A DNA stretch of 64,000 nt from Selaginella moellendorffii (Eukaryota > Plantae > Lycopodiophyta). The DNA lies in NCBI RefSeq assembly GCF_000143415.4, contig NW_003314298.1:1641931-1705930 (forward strand), read 5' to 3'. The number at the start of each line of letters is the position of its first letter. The first letter of the stretch is position 1. Of this stretch, positions 11,659-27,734 are shown one piece after another. The position numbers and the translations under genes were made by a program. The notes under the pieces were generated by a model, which was given only the letters and a program-made list of their open reading frames with translations, was not told where the DNA came from and did no database searches.

Positions 11659-13782
11659 ATGCCGGGCAATGGGCTCCGTGATGCCGCGGCGGGAGGAATT
11701 CTCGCTTGCCAGGGAGTGCAATGCAACTGCAGCCAGAGCGATGGCCTCGAGATCCTCTTCCGCGAGATCCTCAGCCTCCACAGCTACTGGAGCAGCTTCT
11801 TCGGCGCCGAGCTCGACGCTCCGCGGGTAAGGGTTTTTCTCCCCCAGCTGGTTGGAGCCGTGGAATCGGCAGCGCGGCTGGTCCGGAGCTACTCCAGCGG
11901 GCCATGGCTGCTCTCGTCGCTGCGCAAGCTTGAGAATCGAGATGGGTTCTTGCGCGCCGCGGAGATTGTGTGGAGGTATGTGGAAATCGTGCAGCGGCAG
12001 CTCGGAAGCCTGGATTTGACGATTGAGAAGAGGCGGATTTTGGCGAGGCTGGAAGAGAAAGTTGGGATTGAAAAGAAGGTATTGAGATGCTTGCTGGAAG
12101 AGGCGGCTGGCACCGATAGAATGGAACTCAAGTTCAAGGTGGAGGCCGAGAGAAGCTCGCGCATGCACAACTTAAAGCTGTTTGTTCAAGGGGGTAGGAA
12201 GATCATGCTCGACGCTCTCTCGCAGAAGCTGGATTCCACCGAGAGAATCTATTTCATCGATCCAAGGTCGCTGCTCTTGAGTGGAATCGTGTTGGGTGAC
12301 GCGAATTCTCTCGTGCAAAAAGGAAACTGGCTGGGACAGGCAGTGGCAGTGAAGAAGTGTGGCGATGGTTTTCGCTACTGCAGAGAGGCCGGGGTCTTCC
12401 AGCACTTCCAGCCGTCCCACCCGAACGTGATACAAGTCTTGGGAGAGTCCGAGGTTCCGGAAACAAAGGAGAAACTCCTCGTCATGGAGGAGAAGGACAG
12501 CGATCTAAAGAGATACTTTCACTCTTCCGGCCCGATCACGCAACTTCAAGCGGTGGACTTTCTGATCCAGATCGCTGGTGCGATGGTTTACCTGCACGGC
12601 AAAGACGTTTGCTACCGAGACCTCAAGCTCGAGAACATCATGATCGACGTCAAGTATCTGGAGCTCACTTTGGCGGACTTTGGCCACTCAAAACCACGCT
12701 TTGATCCTCTGGGAGACAACACTTGTCCCGTTGGAACTGTCAGCTACATGGCCCCGGAAGTTCTCGCTGGGATAACCTCCGGCCAGGATCCCGGCTATGG
12801 CTTCAGCGTGGACGTCTTCAGCTTTGGGATCGCTTGCTCCGAGATTGTGTCTGGACAGCCTCTGGAGCTGACGGTCCCTCTAACAAGGGAGGAACGAATC
12901 GAGCGATTGCGGCGTGGAGAGAGACCTTCGCTTCCAGAGTCTTGCCACCAGAAGCTCAAGCAGCTCATCACGCAGTGCTGGGATTTTTCGCCGAAGAACC
13001 GACCGACTTTCGAGGTGATCTACGAGAAACTCTGGGAGATCAAAGAAGAGCTCTTGGCCGGAAGCCCCGCTAGCACGGACCCGGGAGAAGCTTCGCCGGC
13101 GTCTGAGATCCAAGCCGCTGGGATCCAAAACTTGGCAATCACTGGAGCAAACACGGTGGGAAGCAAATCGACAGCAACTTGGCAGTACGTGAACGAGACG
13201 AGCTTCTGCGTGGTTGGGTGGCAAAGATACAGGGATCTAGAGTCCGAGGAGCCCCAGCTATCCTGGAAACTCTCGCTCACGTCAGGGACTTCGAGCGATT
13301 ACACCATCACTCCCGACGATCTCGACCGGCACATTGGCGTGATTTGCTTGCCGCTGGCTCTGGTCGATGGGAAGATCGTGCCAAGGCAACAGGCTCGCTT
13401 CACTCACGGAGCTCTCGTCTCGCAAGATCTGGCGATGGCGAGGGAGATGGAGAGGCACTTGAGGAAGGAACACGTTGCTTTCGACATCACCGTCGACCGC
13501 CGGAAGATCAAGCTCAACCTCTGCCACACCGACTACCATCTCGTGTGGCATATGGGAAGCACCAAGAACTTCCGCGGCCAGTTTGTTCGTGGAGACGTGA
13601 GCGTCGAGGTGGTGGGCGATTGCTCCATGGTGATCTCCAAGGCCAGCCAGAGCCAGAGAAGCACGATCGACTTCAAGGATTCTTACAGGAGGAACTTAGC
13701 AGTGCTTCTGATTCGCCATTTTTTGGAATCCAGTCCTTCCCAAAATGGATTGGACCACATTCCAACCCGGAAGACTTGGTAG
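11659..13782 (+). CDS. Intronless 707-aa kinase: MLKL/HeLo-like N-terminal helical bundle + TKL-type kinase + C-terminal Ig(A9)/PH-like module
   Basis: VAVKK, YRDLKLEN, DFG, GTVSYMAPE, DVFSFG. C-terminus has IQNLAITG, YTITPDDLDRHIGVICLP and RRNLAVLLIRHF. Confidence 0.85.
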   Translation: MPGNGLRDAAAGGILACQGVQCNCSQSDGLEILFREILSLHSYWSSFFGAELDAPRVRVFLPQLVGAVESAARLVRSYSSGPWLLSSLRKLENRDGFLRAAEIVWRYVEIVQRQLGSLDLTIEKRRILARLEEKVGIEKKVLRCLLEEAAGTDRMELKFKVEAERSSRMHNLKLFVQGGRKIMLDALSQKLDSTERIYFIDPRSLLLSGIVLGDANSLVQKGNWLGQAVAVKKCGDGFRYCREAGVFQHFQPSHPNVIQVLGESEVPETKEKLLVMEEKDSDLKRYFHSSGPITQLQAVDFLIQIAGAMVYLHGKDVCYRDLKLENIMIDVKYLELTLADFGHSKPRFDPLGDNTCPVGTVSYMAPEVLAGITSGQDPGYGFSVDVFSFGIACSEIVSGQPLELTVPLTREERIERLRRGERPSLPESCHQKLKQLITQCWDFSPKNRPTFEVIYEKLWEIKEELLAGSPASTDPGEASPASEIQAAGIQNLAITGANTVGSKSTATWQYVNETSFCVVGWQRYRDLESEEPQLSWKLSLTSGTSSDYTITPDDLDRHIGVICLPLALVDGKIVPRQQARFTHGALVSQDLAMAREMERHLRKEHVAFDITVDRRKIKLNLCHTDYHLVWHMGSTKNFRGQFVRGDVSVEVVGDCSMVISKASQSQRSTIDFKDSYRRNLAVLLIRHFLESSPSQNGLDHIPTRKTW

Positions 13783-22925: not shown

Positions 22926-24590
22926 TTAGTCCCACATGAGCTGCTGCTGCTGCTGCTGCTGGTAGAGATCCGGGAGCTCGTCTCGGTTGTAGAGGCACGG
23001 GTAGCAATTGAGCTGCGTGGCGGACGGCGAGTTTAGAGCAGGGATCATCTCACCTTGAAACATGAGAGCCAAGTTAGCCGGGTGATTCAAGCCGCTGCTG
23101 TAACTTAAAAGGTTTACAGGCACGGGGATGAGCTCCGGCGGTGGCCCCGGCATCTGCGACTCGAGCTCGAGCAGCGCGTAGAAATCCTCGTCCGGGCACA
23201 CCAATCCACCCCCTGGAAGTTCACCAAAGTGAGAGCTTTATCGCAGCGATCGATCAGATAAAACTAGCAACCAGAGAGCAAGAAAACTGTGAATCAATCG
23301 AAGCAAACTAGAACGAGTGCCCGGAGGATGAAAGAATCAAGAAAACTAGAGAATCAATCACTCGAGAATCTCACGAACTTACGGAAGGTGGTGGCGGTGG
23401 TGGTTTGCTCCACCTGGTCCTCGTCCCACACCTCGAAGAGCCTCAGCTGATAGATTCCTTCCTCGTTGACGGCGCTGGATTTGCCGTAGACCAGCGGCTG
23501 CTCGTCCGGGGAGTGGTGATCGTGATCGCGCTGGGCTTGATGGTCTTGGTGGAACAAGACATCACGCAAGAAGTTGCCGCCGCCGCTCCCACCGCTGTTG
23601 GATCCATAGCTCTCGCTCGTGGATTCCGGCTGGCTTTGCTGCTGGTGCTGCTGGTTGATCTGCTCGAGAAGACGGTGGTGGTGATAAGCAGCGGCAAAGT
23701 CGTCGTGATGATCATCGCCTCGAGCTCCATCGTCGTTGTAGTAGGACGAGGTGGCGATCGAGGAAGGATGGTCGTGGCTGTTCTTGGCGGCGGCGATCAA
23801 GATGCCGCCGCTCTTCCTGCTACTGTTGTTGCTATTGCTGCTCTTGCTGCTGGTGCTACTGCTCACCACCACCTGGTTGTGGTGATGACCAAGATAATGA
23901 TCTTCTTGCGCTTCTTTCCGGTGATGGCCGCCGCGAGCAAGATTGGAGCACAAGTCTTGGAGGTCCGGGGGATAGACCGGCAGCCCCGCTCGCATCCTCC
24001 GCTTGATCCTTGTGTTCCAGTAGTTCTTGATCTCGTTGTCAGTCCTTCCGGGCAACTAGAGCCAAGAAAGAAAGAGAGATGAGATGAGATATCATTCATC
24101 ACAGCATAGAGACAAGGAAAGAAGCAAAGAATGCAAGAAGAGAGAGCTCGAGGGAGAGGGAGAGAAATCGCAAAGAAGAGGAGAGAGCTCGAGAGCTCGA
24201 GAGCTCGAGAGAGATGGAAAAAGAGCTTGCCTGTGACGCCATTCTCGCCCACTTGTTGCCGAGCTTGGCATGGAGCTCGATGATGGTTCTTTCCTCCTCG
24301 GGGGTGAAGGCGCCCTTCTTGAGGTTGGGGCGGAGGTGATTCGCCCACCGCAGCCGGCAGCTCTTGCCGCAGCGCGAGAGGCCGCAGTTCTTCTGGACAT
24401 TGTTCCAGTTGCCCTCGCCGTGCTTGTGAACATAGCCCACAAGAATCGCGTCCTCGCTCGGCGTCCACGGCCCCTTCTTCAATCCCTTCACCGCGCCGCC
24501 GCCTCCTCCCCTTCCTCTTCCCTCCTCGCAGAGCTCCAATGCCACCGCCGCCGCCGCCGCCACTCCTCCTCCTTGCATTGGATCGCCCAT
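22926..24590 (-). CDS. GAMYB: GAMYB-like R2R3-MYB transcription factor, 3 exons (in-frame upstream ATG also at 24701)
   Basis: [36 protein letters not shown]|[16 protein letters not shown] followed by Box 1 RAGLPVYP. Confidence 0.85.
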
Positions 24591-24722
24591 GAGACTCCGC
24601 GGGTTCTTGATCTGCTGGCCTTGAGTTTGAGCGAATATACCCCAACGAGAAGATTCCCAGAAACGAGCACGAATATGCCCACCAAAGAATATGTTTCCCA
24701 TTTGAAATCGATTCCCTCCTCT

Positions 24723-26921
24723 CTACCGCGCCGAGATGGATTCATGGCGCCGTTCCCAGAAGTACATCATCGTGAGCACGGCTGCGTCGCGGGTGGATTG
24801 CGCCGTGAATTTGATCACGCACGAGCTGCCGTCGCTCCTCCGGAGATCGCACAGCATCGGCCCCGCGGGCGAGAGCTGGAGCGGGGCCGGGTGCTCGCGC
24901 CCCTGTGGGGAGTCCGAGAAGGAGTAGCGGACGTTCTTGGGATTTCCCTGCCCCCACCACAGGAGATAGTCCTGGCGATTGATGAAGAGCTTCCCCGTCG
25001 ACTCCCACCACCGCGGGCGCAGCTGGACCACCTTGAAGCTCGCCTGGCCGCCGGCGTAGCTCCTTTCGATCGTCTCCTGGAGCTCGCCGCCAAGCCCAAC
25101 CCTGCTGCTCGACTTCCTGGCCACGATCCCGGGACGCATCGTGGAGCTGAGCGGCAGGCACTGGAGCACCAGCTTCTTCCGGTACTCCGCGGCTGTGATC
25201 GTGCGGGTGAGCTCCGGGATGGAAGAAGACGAGGCCGCGGTGATCACTGGAACCAGCACCGGTGGCTGATGAGCTATTCCACTCTCGCCCTCGCAGATCC
25301 ACTGGCAGAGGACGAACGCGGCACCGTTCACTGCCCGCAACCGGACGCCAAGGTTGCTGCCAACCACCGGCGCTCCTCGCAGCCGCAGCTCCTCCACACC
25401 GGGAAGAACCACGCTGGATCGATCGTCGTGGTGGACGACGCTGACGCTGACGCTGTTGCTGCTGCTAGAGCTCGTCGTGTTGTTGTTGCTCGCGGTGGTG
25501 CTGCTCTCCGTGAGGTTCCACGCCAAGAGCTTCCTCTTGATACTGGCGAGCTCGCGCTCGATCTCCGAGAAGGCGGGGCGGGACTCGGCGTCGCCGCTCC
25601 AGCAGCGCGTAATGAGATCCCGGAGCTCGCCGGGGCACGACGCCGGGAGCTCGGGCCTCTTCCCGGAGTCGACCATCTCCCTGACTTCGTTGATCCCGAG
25701 CCATCGCTTGTCTCCAAACGGCGGTGATCCAGTGAGAACCTCGGAGCACAGCACGCCAAAGCTGTACACGTCCACCTTGCGCGAGTAGCCGCCCAGCGTC
25801 GCGGCCGCGGACGCCATCATCTCGGGCGCCATGTACCGCGGCGTGCCGCGGAGGCTGGTCAAGTCGTTGACCATGCTGTCAAAGCCGGTCCTCGCGATGC
25901 CGAAGTCAGTCAACAGAACGTTGACCATCCGCCGGTCGTTGCCGTCAAAGTCCACCAGGACGTTCTGCGGCTTAAGATCGCGGTGGACGACGCCGTGGTC
26001 GTGGAGGAATTGCGTACCGCGGGCGATCTGGAGGAGCAAGTCGATGGCGAGGTGGGAGGGCGCGCCGCCGCCACCGCCAGCGTCGAGGAAGCGCCGCAGA
26101 TCCATGCGCATGAGCTCCATCACGATCACCGGATCGCCATCGCCAGCGCCCAGGTAGCCGATCACCTGGAGGACGTGGGGGTGTGGCGCGACGAGCGCCG
26201 CCACCTCCCTCTCAAACGTGACGTCGTCGCGCTTGAAGACCTTGACGGCCACCGCCTGTCCCAGCCAGTCCGCGCGGTACACCGTCCCGGACGCGCCCTG
26301 CCCGAGCTTGTCCGCCGGCTCCCACGTCACGTCCGCCCGGCGGAGCATCGGCGGCGCCGCCGTATCGCCGCCGCCCTGCCTCAGCCGCTCCAGCGCGTGG
26401 GCGCTCACCGGGTCCCCCGCCTCGCGGACCCGATGCTCCAGCGCCGCCACCATCTTCTCGCGCTCACGCGCCTCCGCGCCCAGCAGCTCCTCGCGCACGA
26501 AGGATTGGTGCTCGAGGCACTTGTGGCGCAGGATCTCGCCGCCGCCGCCGCCAATCAAAACCCTAGCGCTCACGGCCTCCACGACCTCCTCCAGATCCTC
26601 GAGCACCGCCAGGAATTCGTCGCCGCTGTGGAGCCGCGCCGCCGCCATCTGGAGCCAGCAGCGAGCGCCGCCACAGTCACCCACCAGCTTGAGCGCGCGC
26701 TTGAAGATCTTCACCATCTCCAGCATTGCCGGGCCGGCGCGCGTCACGAATTCGGCCCTGGATCCGCCAGCCTTCCAGGCCAGCACGTAGCCATCGATCT
26801 GGGAGCAGCGGAGGTGGAGGGCGCGGCACTGGCGGCGCCGGATCTTGGCCGCCACGCTCGCGTGCCACAGCTTCTCTGTGAGCGCCGACAGCTCGAAGCT
26901 GCAAGCGATGGAATCCTCCAT
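24723..26921 (-). CDS. Intronless 732-aa kinase: MLKL-like four-helix bundle + active-type kinase + C-terminal Ig(A9)/PH-like module
   Basis: N-terminal IRRRQCRAL and MLEMVKIFKRALKLVGDC..CWL; GQGASGTVY, VAVK, HRDLKPQN, DFG, GTPRYMAPE; C-terminal LPGVEELRLRG, IERSYAGGQASFKV, TRDAAVLTMMYF. Confidence 0.87.
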   Translation of the reverse strand: MEDSIACSFELSALTEKLWHASVAAKIRRRQCRALHLRCSQIDGYVLAWKAGGSRAEFVTRAGPAMLEMVKIFKRALKLVGDCGGARCWLQMAAARLHSGDEFLAVLEDLEEVVEAVSARVLIGGGGGEILRHKCLEHQSFVREELLGAEAREREKMVAALEHRVREAGDPVSAHALERLRQGGGDTAAPPMLRRADVTWEPADKLGQGASGTVYRADWLGQAVAVKVFKRDDVTFEREVAALVAPHPHVLQVIGYLGAGDGDPVIVMELMRMDLRRFLDAGGGGGAPSHLAIDLLLQIARGTQFLHDHGVVHRDLKPQNVLVDFDGNDRRMVNVLLTDFGIARTGFDSMVNDLTSLRGTPRYMAPEMMASAAATLGGYSRKVDVYSFGVLCSEVLTGSPPFGDKRWLGINEVREMVDSGKRPELPASCPGELRDLITRCWSGDAESRPAFSEIERELASIKRKLLAWNLTESSTTASNNNTTSSSSSNSVSVSVVHHDDRSSVVLPGVEELRLRGAPVVGSNLGVRLRAVNGAAFVLCQWICEGESGIAHQPPVLVPVITAASSSSIPELTRTITAAEYRKKLVLQCLPLSSTMRPGIVARKSSSRVGLGGELQETIERSYAGGQASFKVVQLRPRWWESTGKLFINRQDYLLWWGQGNPKNVRYSFSDSPQGREHPAPLQLSPAGPMLCDLRRSDGSSCVIKFTAQSTRDAAVLTMMYFWERRHESISAR

Positions 26922-27734
26922 TTTCCATGGGGATTGGCCAGCGCCGTCAATGCGATCCGTCTTGCCCCCCTCGCCACGATTCTGGCCGCGCTCATCCACT
27001 CGGTCCCCTAGATTTCCTCCTCCCCTTTCCCCGGATTTTGGTGGCTTACCTCACTTGGCAAGAACAAGAGAATGATAGCGCGTAAAGAGTTTTTGCCCTA
27101 GAAAAGCATTGACCTTGTCATACTTTCCAGCGCTGACCGCGTGCCAAGCTGGGGAAATACTTAGATGGACGGTACAGATTCAACTCGATTTTGTCACCTT
27201 TTTTGTTAGAAGCACAGGAAAAATGGTTTTCAACGTCGCGCATCATACTTGGAATCTCCTTGGACTTTTGGCTTGCAAATTCTGGTGGGGTATTTTCAAT
27301 CTGATTTGCCGTTACATAACAAGAGCCAGTGACGATCGACACGAGATCCAAGTGTCACGGAGTGATTCTTCTGTCTCCTCAAATTCCCCCAGGACTTGTG
27401 AAACCAAACGCAGAGAAAAGGCTCAAAAGGCCCGAGGAGGTGTGCATCTGGCGGAGAAGATCCTTTAAGCGCAGTCAGCTAAATTCAATGCAAGTTAATG
27501 GTCTTTTGACCTAAATAAAAATTTGCTCAATCTTTCCTTTTGGATCTGGAATTCAAATAAGCCTTTAGGTGAAGGAGATCGAAAGCAAAGTTAGCGCAAA
27601 TCAAAGCGCCAGTCAACACTAACACGAAAAGGGCTCCAAAGAAGATCACATCCAGTGTGAGCCGGTCAGCGCGGTCAAGGTCTCGAGAAAGGTGGTGGCG
27701 CTTGTCAACGCGAGACGGCAAGAGGCACCAGCGC

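Follow-up and report, generated by a model that had tools for sequence, protein, structure and literature searches.

An expressed, intronless kinase gene of Selaginella moellendorffii with a predicted MLKL-like N-terminal bundle and a fused Ig-PH tail

The gene described here lies in a 64,000-nucleotide stretch of genomic DNA of the lycophyte Selaginella moellendorffii (contig NW_003314298.1; this whole stretch is called the window, and positions are counted from its first letter). It is a single intronless open reading frame (ORF) on the minus strand, at 24723..26921, that starts with ATG and encodes 732 amino acids (aa) followed by a stop codon; the mechanically called ORF reaches upstream as far as a GTG at 26999. 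The product is composed of a helical N-terminal region predicted to resemble the four-helix bundle of plant MLKL proteins, a protein kinase domain, and a C-terminal module in which an immunoglobulin-like (Ig) domain is followed by a pleckstrin-homology-like (PH) domain. The parts of the gene are given below, with the confidence of the structural model as pLDDT (predicted local distance difference test).

24723..26921, minus strand: complete coding sequence of the MLKL-like kinase with an Ig-PH tail (ORF, translation, RNA contigs)
26922..27085, minus strand: 5' untranslated region (RNA-contig ends at 27072, 27076 and 27085; depth drops beyond 27046-27166)
26559..26921, minus strand: predicted four-helix bundle, MLKL/HeLo-like, aa 1-121 (AlphaFold2 helices 18-52, 55-81, 89-95 and 100-121; pLDDT 30-63)
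26337..26558, minus strand: predicted 'brace'-like helices 127-168 and 171-181 joining the bundle to the kinase, aa 122-195 (model; pLDDT 53-68)
25512..26336, minus strand: TKL-type protein kinase domain, aa 196-470 (Pfam, motif alignment, PDB sequence relatives, model pLDDT 80-97)
25407..25511, minus strand: Ser/Thr/Asn-rich linker, predicted to be disordered, aa 471-505 (pLDDT below 50 for residues 471-502)
25092..25406, minus strand: A9-type Ig beta-sandwich (IG_AIR9/SCAB-Ig-like), aa 506-610 (homologues, Pfam on the family, 4DIX, model)
24726..25091, minus strand: PH-like domain (DUF7046/SCAB-PH-like), aa 611-732 (homologues, Pfam on the family, 4DIX, model)

The gene is real, intronless and transcribed. 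Contigs from four RNA runs, each belonging to a different study, span 24231..27085 unbroken and cover the ORF without a joint; the ORF is therefore intronless, as the initial annotation, made from the letters of the window alone, had proposed. One of the contigs covering the kinase ORF also contains a spliced intron of the downstream gene, and thus derives from RNA and not from contaminating DNA. The allele on the other haplotype (XP_024531132.1, 'uncharacterized protein LOC112346415', 737 aa) is intact, and its 22 differences, made up of 17 substitutions plus five glycines inserted into a Gly run, are spread evenly across the domains. Both paralogous loci described below can be aligned with the kinase gene end to end. 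With an intact allele and two paralogous loci that align over the full length, this is no mere chance ORF.

A mis-assembled or decaying, functionless chimera would be another explanation of the gene, and it is effectively refuted. Old annotation has split or truncated genes of the family (its partial models include EFJ28680, 166 aa, and XP_024531133, 550 aa), and an unrelated old model of 954 aa on a third scaffold, SELMODRAFT_418594, holds in its residues 349-398 a 50-aa stretch that matches aa 219-268 of the kinase at 96% identity, which is either a captured gene fragment or the product of a chimeric model. Against an artefact stand the unbroken frame of 732 codons, the continuity of the RNA contigs over all three parts, the second haplotype, which is intact and departs by substitutions and the glycine insertion only, and two diverged paralogues with identical domain order.

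A word-index protein search with the whole protein returned kinase matches only, mostly bacterial, and searches of the same kind with the N-terminal and C-terminal regions returned nothing beyond the protein itself. One 731-aa protein with a kinase at the same position was considered as a relative and rejected, as it has no similarity outside the kinase domain; its composition and its C-terminal coiled-coil suggest a bacterial kinase.

The central domain matches the Pfam protein kinase family over aa 203-458 (E 3e-43). Alignment with the paralogues and with other kinases reveals a complete set of catalytic motifs (G207xGxxG212, K227, E239 in alpha-C, H313-R-D315, K317 and N320), and D339-F-G, A365-P-E, D384 and R448 are kept as well. 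The five kinase elements singled out by the initial annotation are thus all present (GQGASG at 207-212, VAVK at 224-227, HRDLKPQN at 313-320, DFG at 339-341 and APE at 365-367), and every string that it quoted from the flanking regions also stands where expected. Among 177,635 PDB sequences, the nearest single-domain relatives of the kinase are AtMLKL3 (6KA4, 111 bits) and AtMLKL2 (6LBA, 106 bits), which score ahead of MLK1, Roco4 and CTR1. An EGFR construct in which the kinase domain is duplicated stands at the top of the list, but only because two domain hits of ~64 bits are summed. The kinase and the AtMLKLs have unusual motifs in common around beta-3, the hinge, helix E and the C-lobe, such as WLGxxxAxK.F, VMELM..DL and IDLLLQIARG..FLH. 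The same alignment shows ALRHF and HGELN or HGDLN at the catalytic positions of AtMLKL2 and AtMLKL3, which lack DFG. Unlike them, the Selaginella kinase keeps every catalytic residue; judged by these motifs it is probably active, and phosphate transfer is therefore probable.

The initial annotation had read the N-terminal region as an MLKL-like four-helix bundle. The strings concerned, IRRRQCRAL (aa 27-35), MLEMVKIFKRALKLVGDC (aa 66-83) and CWL (aa 88-90), are all present, and the protein was modelled with AlphaFold from a checked alignment, with no templates and no MLKL sequence included. The members of this alignment were 3 full-length Selaginella relatives, one of them split in two for entry, together with 4 proteins that join a kinase to Ig-PH, 22 Ig-PH modules and 30 kinase domains; single-sequence AlphaFold was unusable (mean pLDDT 38). 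When the model was compared with solved structures using Foldseek, the cryo-EM chain of AtMLKL3 (6KA4_A) took second place among over 500 matches; its alignment spans 506 columns, and no match has a higher query TM-score than its 0.46. In a VIA-align superposition, model residues 1..472 lie on 6KA4 chain residues 12..530 (428 residues, 3.5 A), bundle, brace and kinase included, whereas kinase-only structures align over ~250 residues each. Of the solved structures, AtMLKL3 alone has an alignment that takes in the N-terminus together with the kinase. Weaker sequence signals point the same way: a sub-threshold Pfam match of the allele to MLKL_N (E 0.091) is in register (its residues 14-118 align with positions 7-109 of the 142 in the profile), a paralogue has a sub-threshold match to DUF7792 (E 0.022), and the language-model neighbours of the N-terminus are the MCAfunc, PUB10_N, MLKL_N and RPW8 clusters, at a score of 0.78 that the calibration of the tool treats as a lead only. 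The Selaginella family members conserve this region, with the pattern QC..L..RC, AL.L, WL and F.

Several results weigh against this assignment. The N-terminal model has a pLDDT of just 30-68, and the alignment is only 3-4 sequences deep there. Pfam places the N-terminus in no family at threshold, and the isolated N-terminal piece matches nothing even at E 10; MCAfunc has no match at that same limit, nor does DUF1221 (PF06760, the N-terminal family of the AtMLKLs) in the protein or its paralogues. A profile of five N-terminal sequences run against PDB sequences found no MLKL, and the N-terminus alone gave no meaningful match there. An MLKL-like fold and packing of the N-terminus are predicted by the model, with moderate support.

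The helical N-terminus also occurs outside the MLKLs. In the AlphaFold database, the best reviewed match covering N-terminus and kinase is Ceratodon purpureus P25848, residues 772-1292 (query 8-468, E 5e-24), and several other matches that include the N-terminus (query ~1-20 to ~490) are kinases with UniProt accessions in a style suggestive of Physcomitrium patens. In the Ceratodon phytochrome-kinase chimera, the C-terminal half seems to equal the bundle-brace-kinase unit. As a helical N-terminus with a kinase is found in many moss kinases and in Ceratodon, it may be a general signalling scaffold and not a death executor, a further point against the MLKL assignment. Pressed further, this would make the Selaginella protein an ordinary signalling kinase, whose N-terminus is a regulatory or oligomerization region of an old land-plant TKL family that permeabilizes no membrane, whose tail serves for localization, and whose resemblance to MLKL reflects shared scaffold ancestry only. 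Besides these moss-type matches at the top of the AlphaFold database list, the fully intact catalytic residues, the lack of any MLKL, DUF1221 or MCAfunc Pfam match at threshold, and the precedent of GRK2-type kinases, in which, with no death function involved, a helical domain precedes the kinase and a PH domain follows it, all favour such a kinase. Yet among solved structures AtMLKL3 alone aligns over N-terminus and kinase, the AtMLKLs are the closest single-domain sequence relatives, and the Ser-rich linker lies at the position of the MLKL Ser-rich region. We regard the ordinary kinase as improbable. With moderate confidence, bundle, brace and kinase together form an old land-plant scaffold that includes the seed-plant MLKLs, and the Selaginella protein has it.

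Beyond the linker the model regains confidence (pLDDT 80-97 for the tail, 75-94 for the strands of the Ig part), with seven strands (508-607), a helix (612-624), a further seven strands (626-705) and a C-terminal helix (708-723). The strings noted earlier in this region are LPGVEELRLRG (506-516), CQW (539-541), QCLP (587-590), IERSYAGGQASFKV (618-631) and TRDAAVLTMMYF (710-721). An exhaustive HMMER search was run with a profile of the two window copies against 1.84 billion representatives (a 50%-identity library). The tail profile retrieved 31 other proteins, with E down to 1.3e-14 and ~205-225 residues aligned. Most are land-plant proteins of 720-890 aa that end in this module and have a long coiled-coil region before it; their sources include Physcomitrium, Riccia, Welwitschia, Amborella and Eucalyptus, and their names are 'uncharacterized' or 'AIR9-like A9 domain-containing'. 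When 28 aligned modules were examined with Pfam, IG_AIR9 was recognized in 27, DUF7046 in 24 and SCAB-Ig in 19. Built from these 28 modules, a family profile aligns with the SCAB1 Ig-PH structure 4DIX_A (E 8.7e-10) from profile position 11 to 205 and chain residue 16 to 210 of 230, thereby covering both sub-domains, and the language-model features of the tail itself lead to IG_AIR9/DUF7046/SCAB-type clusters (0.94).

Two limits bear on this identification and weigh against it. The tail itself lies below Pfam detection, its isolated piece matching nothing even at E 10, and the link to SCAB1 is transitive, through the IG_AIR9 + DUF7046 family. Consistent with this, neither the Selaginella protein alone nor a two-sequence C-terminal profile gave a meaningful match to the tail among PDB sequences; Foldseek on the whole model was dominated by kinase matches. 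A literature search for DUF7046 and IG_AIR9 found no paper on the family. Nevertheless, an Ig + PH module is strongly supported, with IG_AIR9 + DUF7046 nearer than SCAB, so that the proposed SCAB/AIR9-related tail holds, with its closest kin now named.

The order bundle-kinase-Ig-PH was found by exhaustive profile search only in S. moellendorffii, at three loci, all of them intronless. The two loci besides the kinase gene are:

11659..13782, plus strand: paralogue, 707 aa, intronless, with the three-part architecture (tblastn, ORF, end-to-end BLASTP E 6e-48)
L001:10001-13426 (S. moellendorffii GL377571.1), plus strand: third member, XP_024525978, 1141 aa, intronless (bundle-kinase, bundle-pseudokinase, Ig-PH)

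The first lies in the window, 11 kb from the kinase gene, and is 27% identical to it. It has a degenerate Gly-loop and, in the catalytic loop, YRDLKLEN (YRD for HRD), with DFG and APE kept; RNA-run assemblies contain up to 0.89 of its sampled words. In RefSeq its allele is modelled as XP_024531133 (550 aa, named 'probable LIM domain-containing serine/threonine-protein kinase'), which lacks the bundle because its start lies within the brace. In XP_024525978 the first kinase is intact and the second is degenerate (ELSD for HRD, no DFG or APE); its neighbours are housekeeping genes (GrpE, Whirly, MFS). A lineage-specific architecture, as put forward at the outset, agrees with the search. One paralogue (P0171/P0172) was part of the query profile and is absent from the representatives returned; the library can therefore hide members, which makes 'only in Selaginella' a lower bound and absence weak evidence.

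We propose, with a probability of about 0.68, that the gene is an expressed, lycophyte-specific relative of the plant MLKLs in which the bundle and a catalytic-type kinase were fused to a SCAB1/AIR9-A9-type Ig-PH module, copied from the conserved land-plant coiled-coil-Ig-PH family. By analogy with SCAB1, the Ig-PH module would recruit the protein to a phosphoinositide-bearing membrane or to a cytoskeletal partner, or else bind a ligand. Auto- or trans-phosphorylation of the kinase might then control release of the bundle from the kinase and the brace, as suggested by AtMLKL3 and animal MLKL, and the kinase itself could supply the releasing phosphorylation. The freed bundle would act at the membrane in the fashion of MLKL. 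Lipid or cytoskeleton binding and any role in immunity or cell death are putative. Lycophyte relatives of MLKL with a catalytic-looking kinase and a folded tail bear on the origin of the MLKL pseudokinases and on the control of the bundle, and since the proteins are small, intronless and easily expressed, their kinase, lipid-binding and cell-death activities are directly testable.

The Ig-PH module also occurs in other fusions. IG_AIR9 + DUF7046 stand at the C-terminal end of CrRLK1L/LIP2-like cytoplasmic kinases in Erigeron (P0139), Tagetes (P0125) and Rhododendron (P0137), and this asterid combination of kinase and Ig-PH is an independent fusion. In Ricinus communis, XP_015576965 (2033 aa, CC-NB-ARC-LRR) has three IG_AIR9 and one DUF7046 within its LRR region, at residues ~1440-1850; this predicted gene model looks like a nucleotide-binding leucine-rich-repeat receptor (NLR) with Ig-PH as an integrated domain. 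Recurrent fusion to immune-type proteins is the usual mark of integrated domains.

These fusions speak for an integrated decoy, the reading of the initial annotation, in which the Ig-PH tail would mimic effector-targeted coiled-coil-Ig-PH proteins, and contact with an effector would activate the kinase and free the bundle, with sensor and executor in one chain. The tandem kinase-pseudokinase paralogue, which resembles cereal tandem-kinase resistance proteins, and the resistance conferred by Pm13-type MLKL_NTD-kinases (PMC10951266) fit the same idea. However, members of the donor family are all named 'uncharacterized', the Ricinus support comes from a predicted gene model, allelic change is in no excess in the tail (6/227 residues) over the kinase (6/270), and the genes lie among housekeeping genes, not in resistance-gene clusters. 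On balance we consider a decoy doubtful, and no more sober a reading than an ordinary, localized signalling kinase of an old moss and lycophyte family. A broader form of the idea, that the coiled-coil-Ig-PH family is a conserved effector target whose module was captured as bait at least three times (in the Selaginella kinases, the asterid receptor-like cytoplasmic kinases (RLCKs) and the Ricinus NLR), is unlikely. Should it be true, each Selaginella protein would unite sensor, kinase and executioner in one chain, and no MLKL-type immune receptor with an integrated domain that is older would be known. The recurrence of Ig-PH in an NLR and in flowering-plant RLCKs suggests an uncharacterized conserved family as a candidate effector target or hub.

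Directly downstream of the kinase gene, head-to-tail with it, lies a MYB gene of R2R3 type (23354-24701, minus strand). The first in-frame MYB ATG (24701) follows the kinase stop codon (24723-24725) at a distance of 21 nt, with another candidate ATG ~110 nt further on. An RNA contig of 3625 nt begins at the 5' end of the kinase gene, crosses the kinase ORF and continues into the MYB exons; the intron of the MYB gene (24056-24230, boundaries GC..AG on the minus strand) is spliced out of it. Such a contig could reflect overlapping untranslated regions, read-through or a shared transcript.

Among known systems, SCAB1 Ig-PH (PDB 4DIX, 8Y47), described as an atypical phosphoinositide-binding site (PMC10730221), resembles the tail in that the tail-family profile matches both of its halves and the model likewise passes from an Ig sandwich to a PH-like barrel and a C-terminal helix. 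SCAB proteins differ in lacking a kinase and in carrying an actin-binding domain plus a coiled coil ahead of the Ig-PH; SCAB-ABD and SCAB_CC have no Pfam match in the Selaginella protein, the N-terminal 470 residues of which are bundle and kinase. Closer to the tail is the coiled-coil + IG_AIR9 + DUF7046 family (Physcomitrium XP_024365714, Amborella LOC18434840, Riccia, Welwitschia), which is homologous over its full length (~205 residues, ~24% identity) and shares the motifs G..G, QW, TADD, C.P, F.V and RD..VLT..F. This family has no kinase, and its long N-terminal region (the SKALSYRQDVLEENIRLTYALQ block) is absent from the Selaginella protein, in which bundle and kinase take its place.

The moss-type kinases and Ceratodon P25848 are the best predicted-structure matches with a helical N-terminus and a kinase (query 8-468). 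No homologous Ig-PH tail is detectable in them by sequence, and P25848 has a different partner, a phytochrome sensor. A literature search for MLKL in bryophytes returned just NLRtracker counts of 'MLKL' proteins.

Likenesses to immune receptors concern architecture. XP_024525978, with bundle-kinase, bundle-pseudokinase and Ig-PH, is reminiscent of the tandem-kinase resistance proteins of cereals, and the Ricinus NLR contains the module found in the Selaginella tail, as NLRs with integrated domains would. To judge by domain order, the kinase + Ig-PH layout and the tandem paralogue would fit kinase fusion or tandem kinase immune receptors. Membership in the tandem kinase and NLR systems is set by resistance function, however, and the protein encoded at 24723..26921 has a single kinase.

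In Pm13 and 714 MLKL_NTD-kinases of the Poaceae, an MLKL-type bundle precedes a kinase predicted to be active, and they count among the kinase fusion proteins of immunity (PMC10951266). The rice 'ARPK'/MCAfunc + Pkinase type is a further example of this layout. The Selaginella protein, as modelled, shares the order of an MLKL-type bundle followed by a kinase with all catalytic residues. The Pm13-type kinase is of LRR_8B/RLK-Pelle and not of MLKL/TKL type. The N-termini of the Pm13 and rice types are detectable as MLKL_NTD or MCAfunc, neither type has an Ig-PH tail, and a hidden Markov model survey found no MCAfunc + kinase protein in Selaginella (PMC8049495). As Pm13-type kinases look active, an MLKL-type bundle with an active kinase after it is by itself nothing new, and the premise of the initial annotation that angiosperm MLKLs carry pseudokinases, accurate for the AtMLKLs, is incomplete.

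Finally, the plant MLKLs (AtMLKL1-3; cryo-EM structures 6KA4 and 6LBA; bioRxiv 10.1101/681015) share with the Selaginella protein, as modelled, the order of a four-helix bundle, a brace, a TKL-type kinase fold and a Ser-rich region; the Ser/Thr/Asn linker is placed where the plant MLKLs have their serine-rich region. They have been described for seed plants, whereas Selaginella is a lycophyte, and the DUF1221 signature goes undetected in the Selaginella protein. The AtMLKLs are pseudokinases with a disordered tail that holds no known domain; the Selaginella protein has K227, HRD and DFG, and its linker leads into a folded Ig-PH module. It is thus a relative and variant of the MLKLs, not a canonical member, and what is new is the combination with Ig-PH, an apparently active kinase of MLKL type, and the occurrence in a lycophyte.

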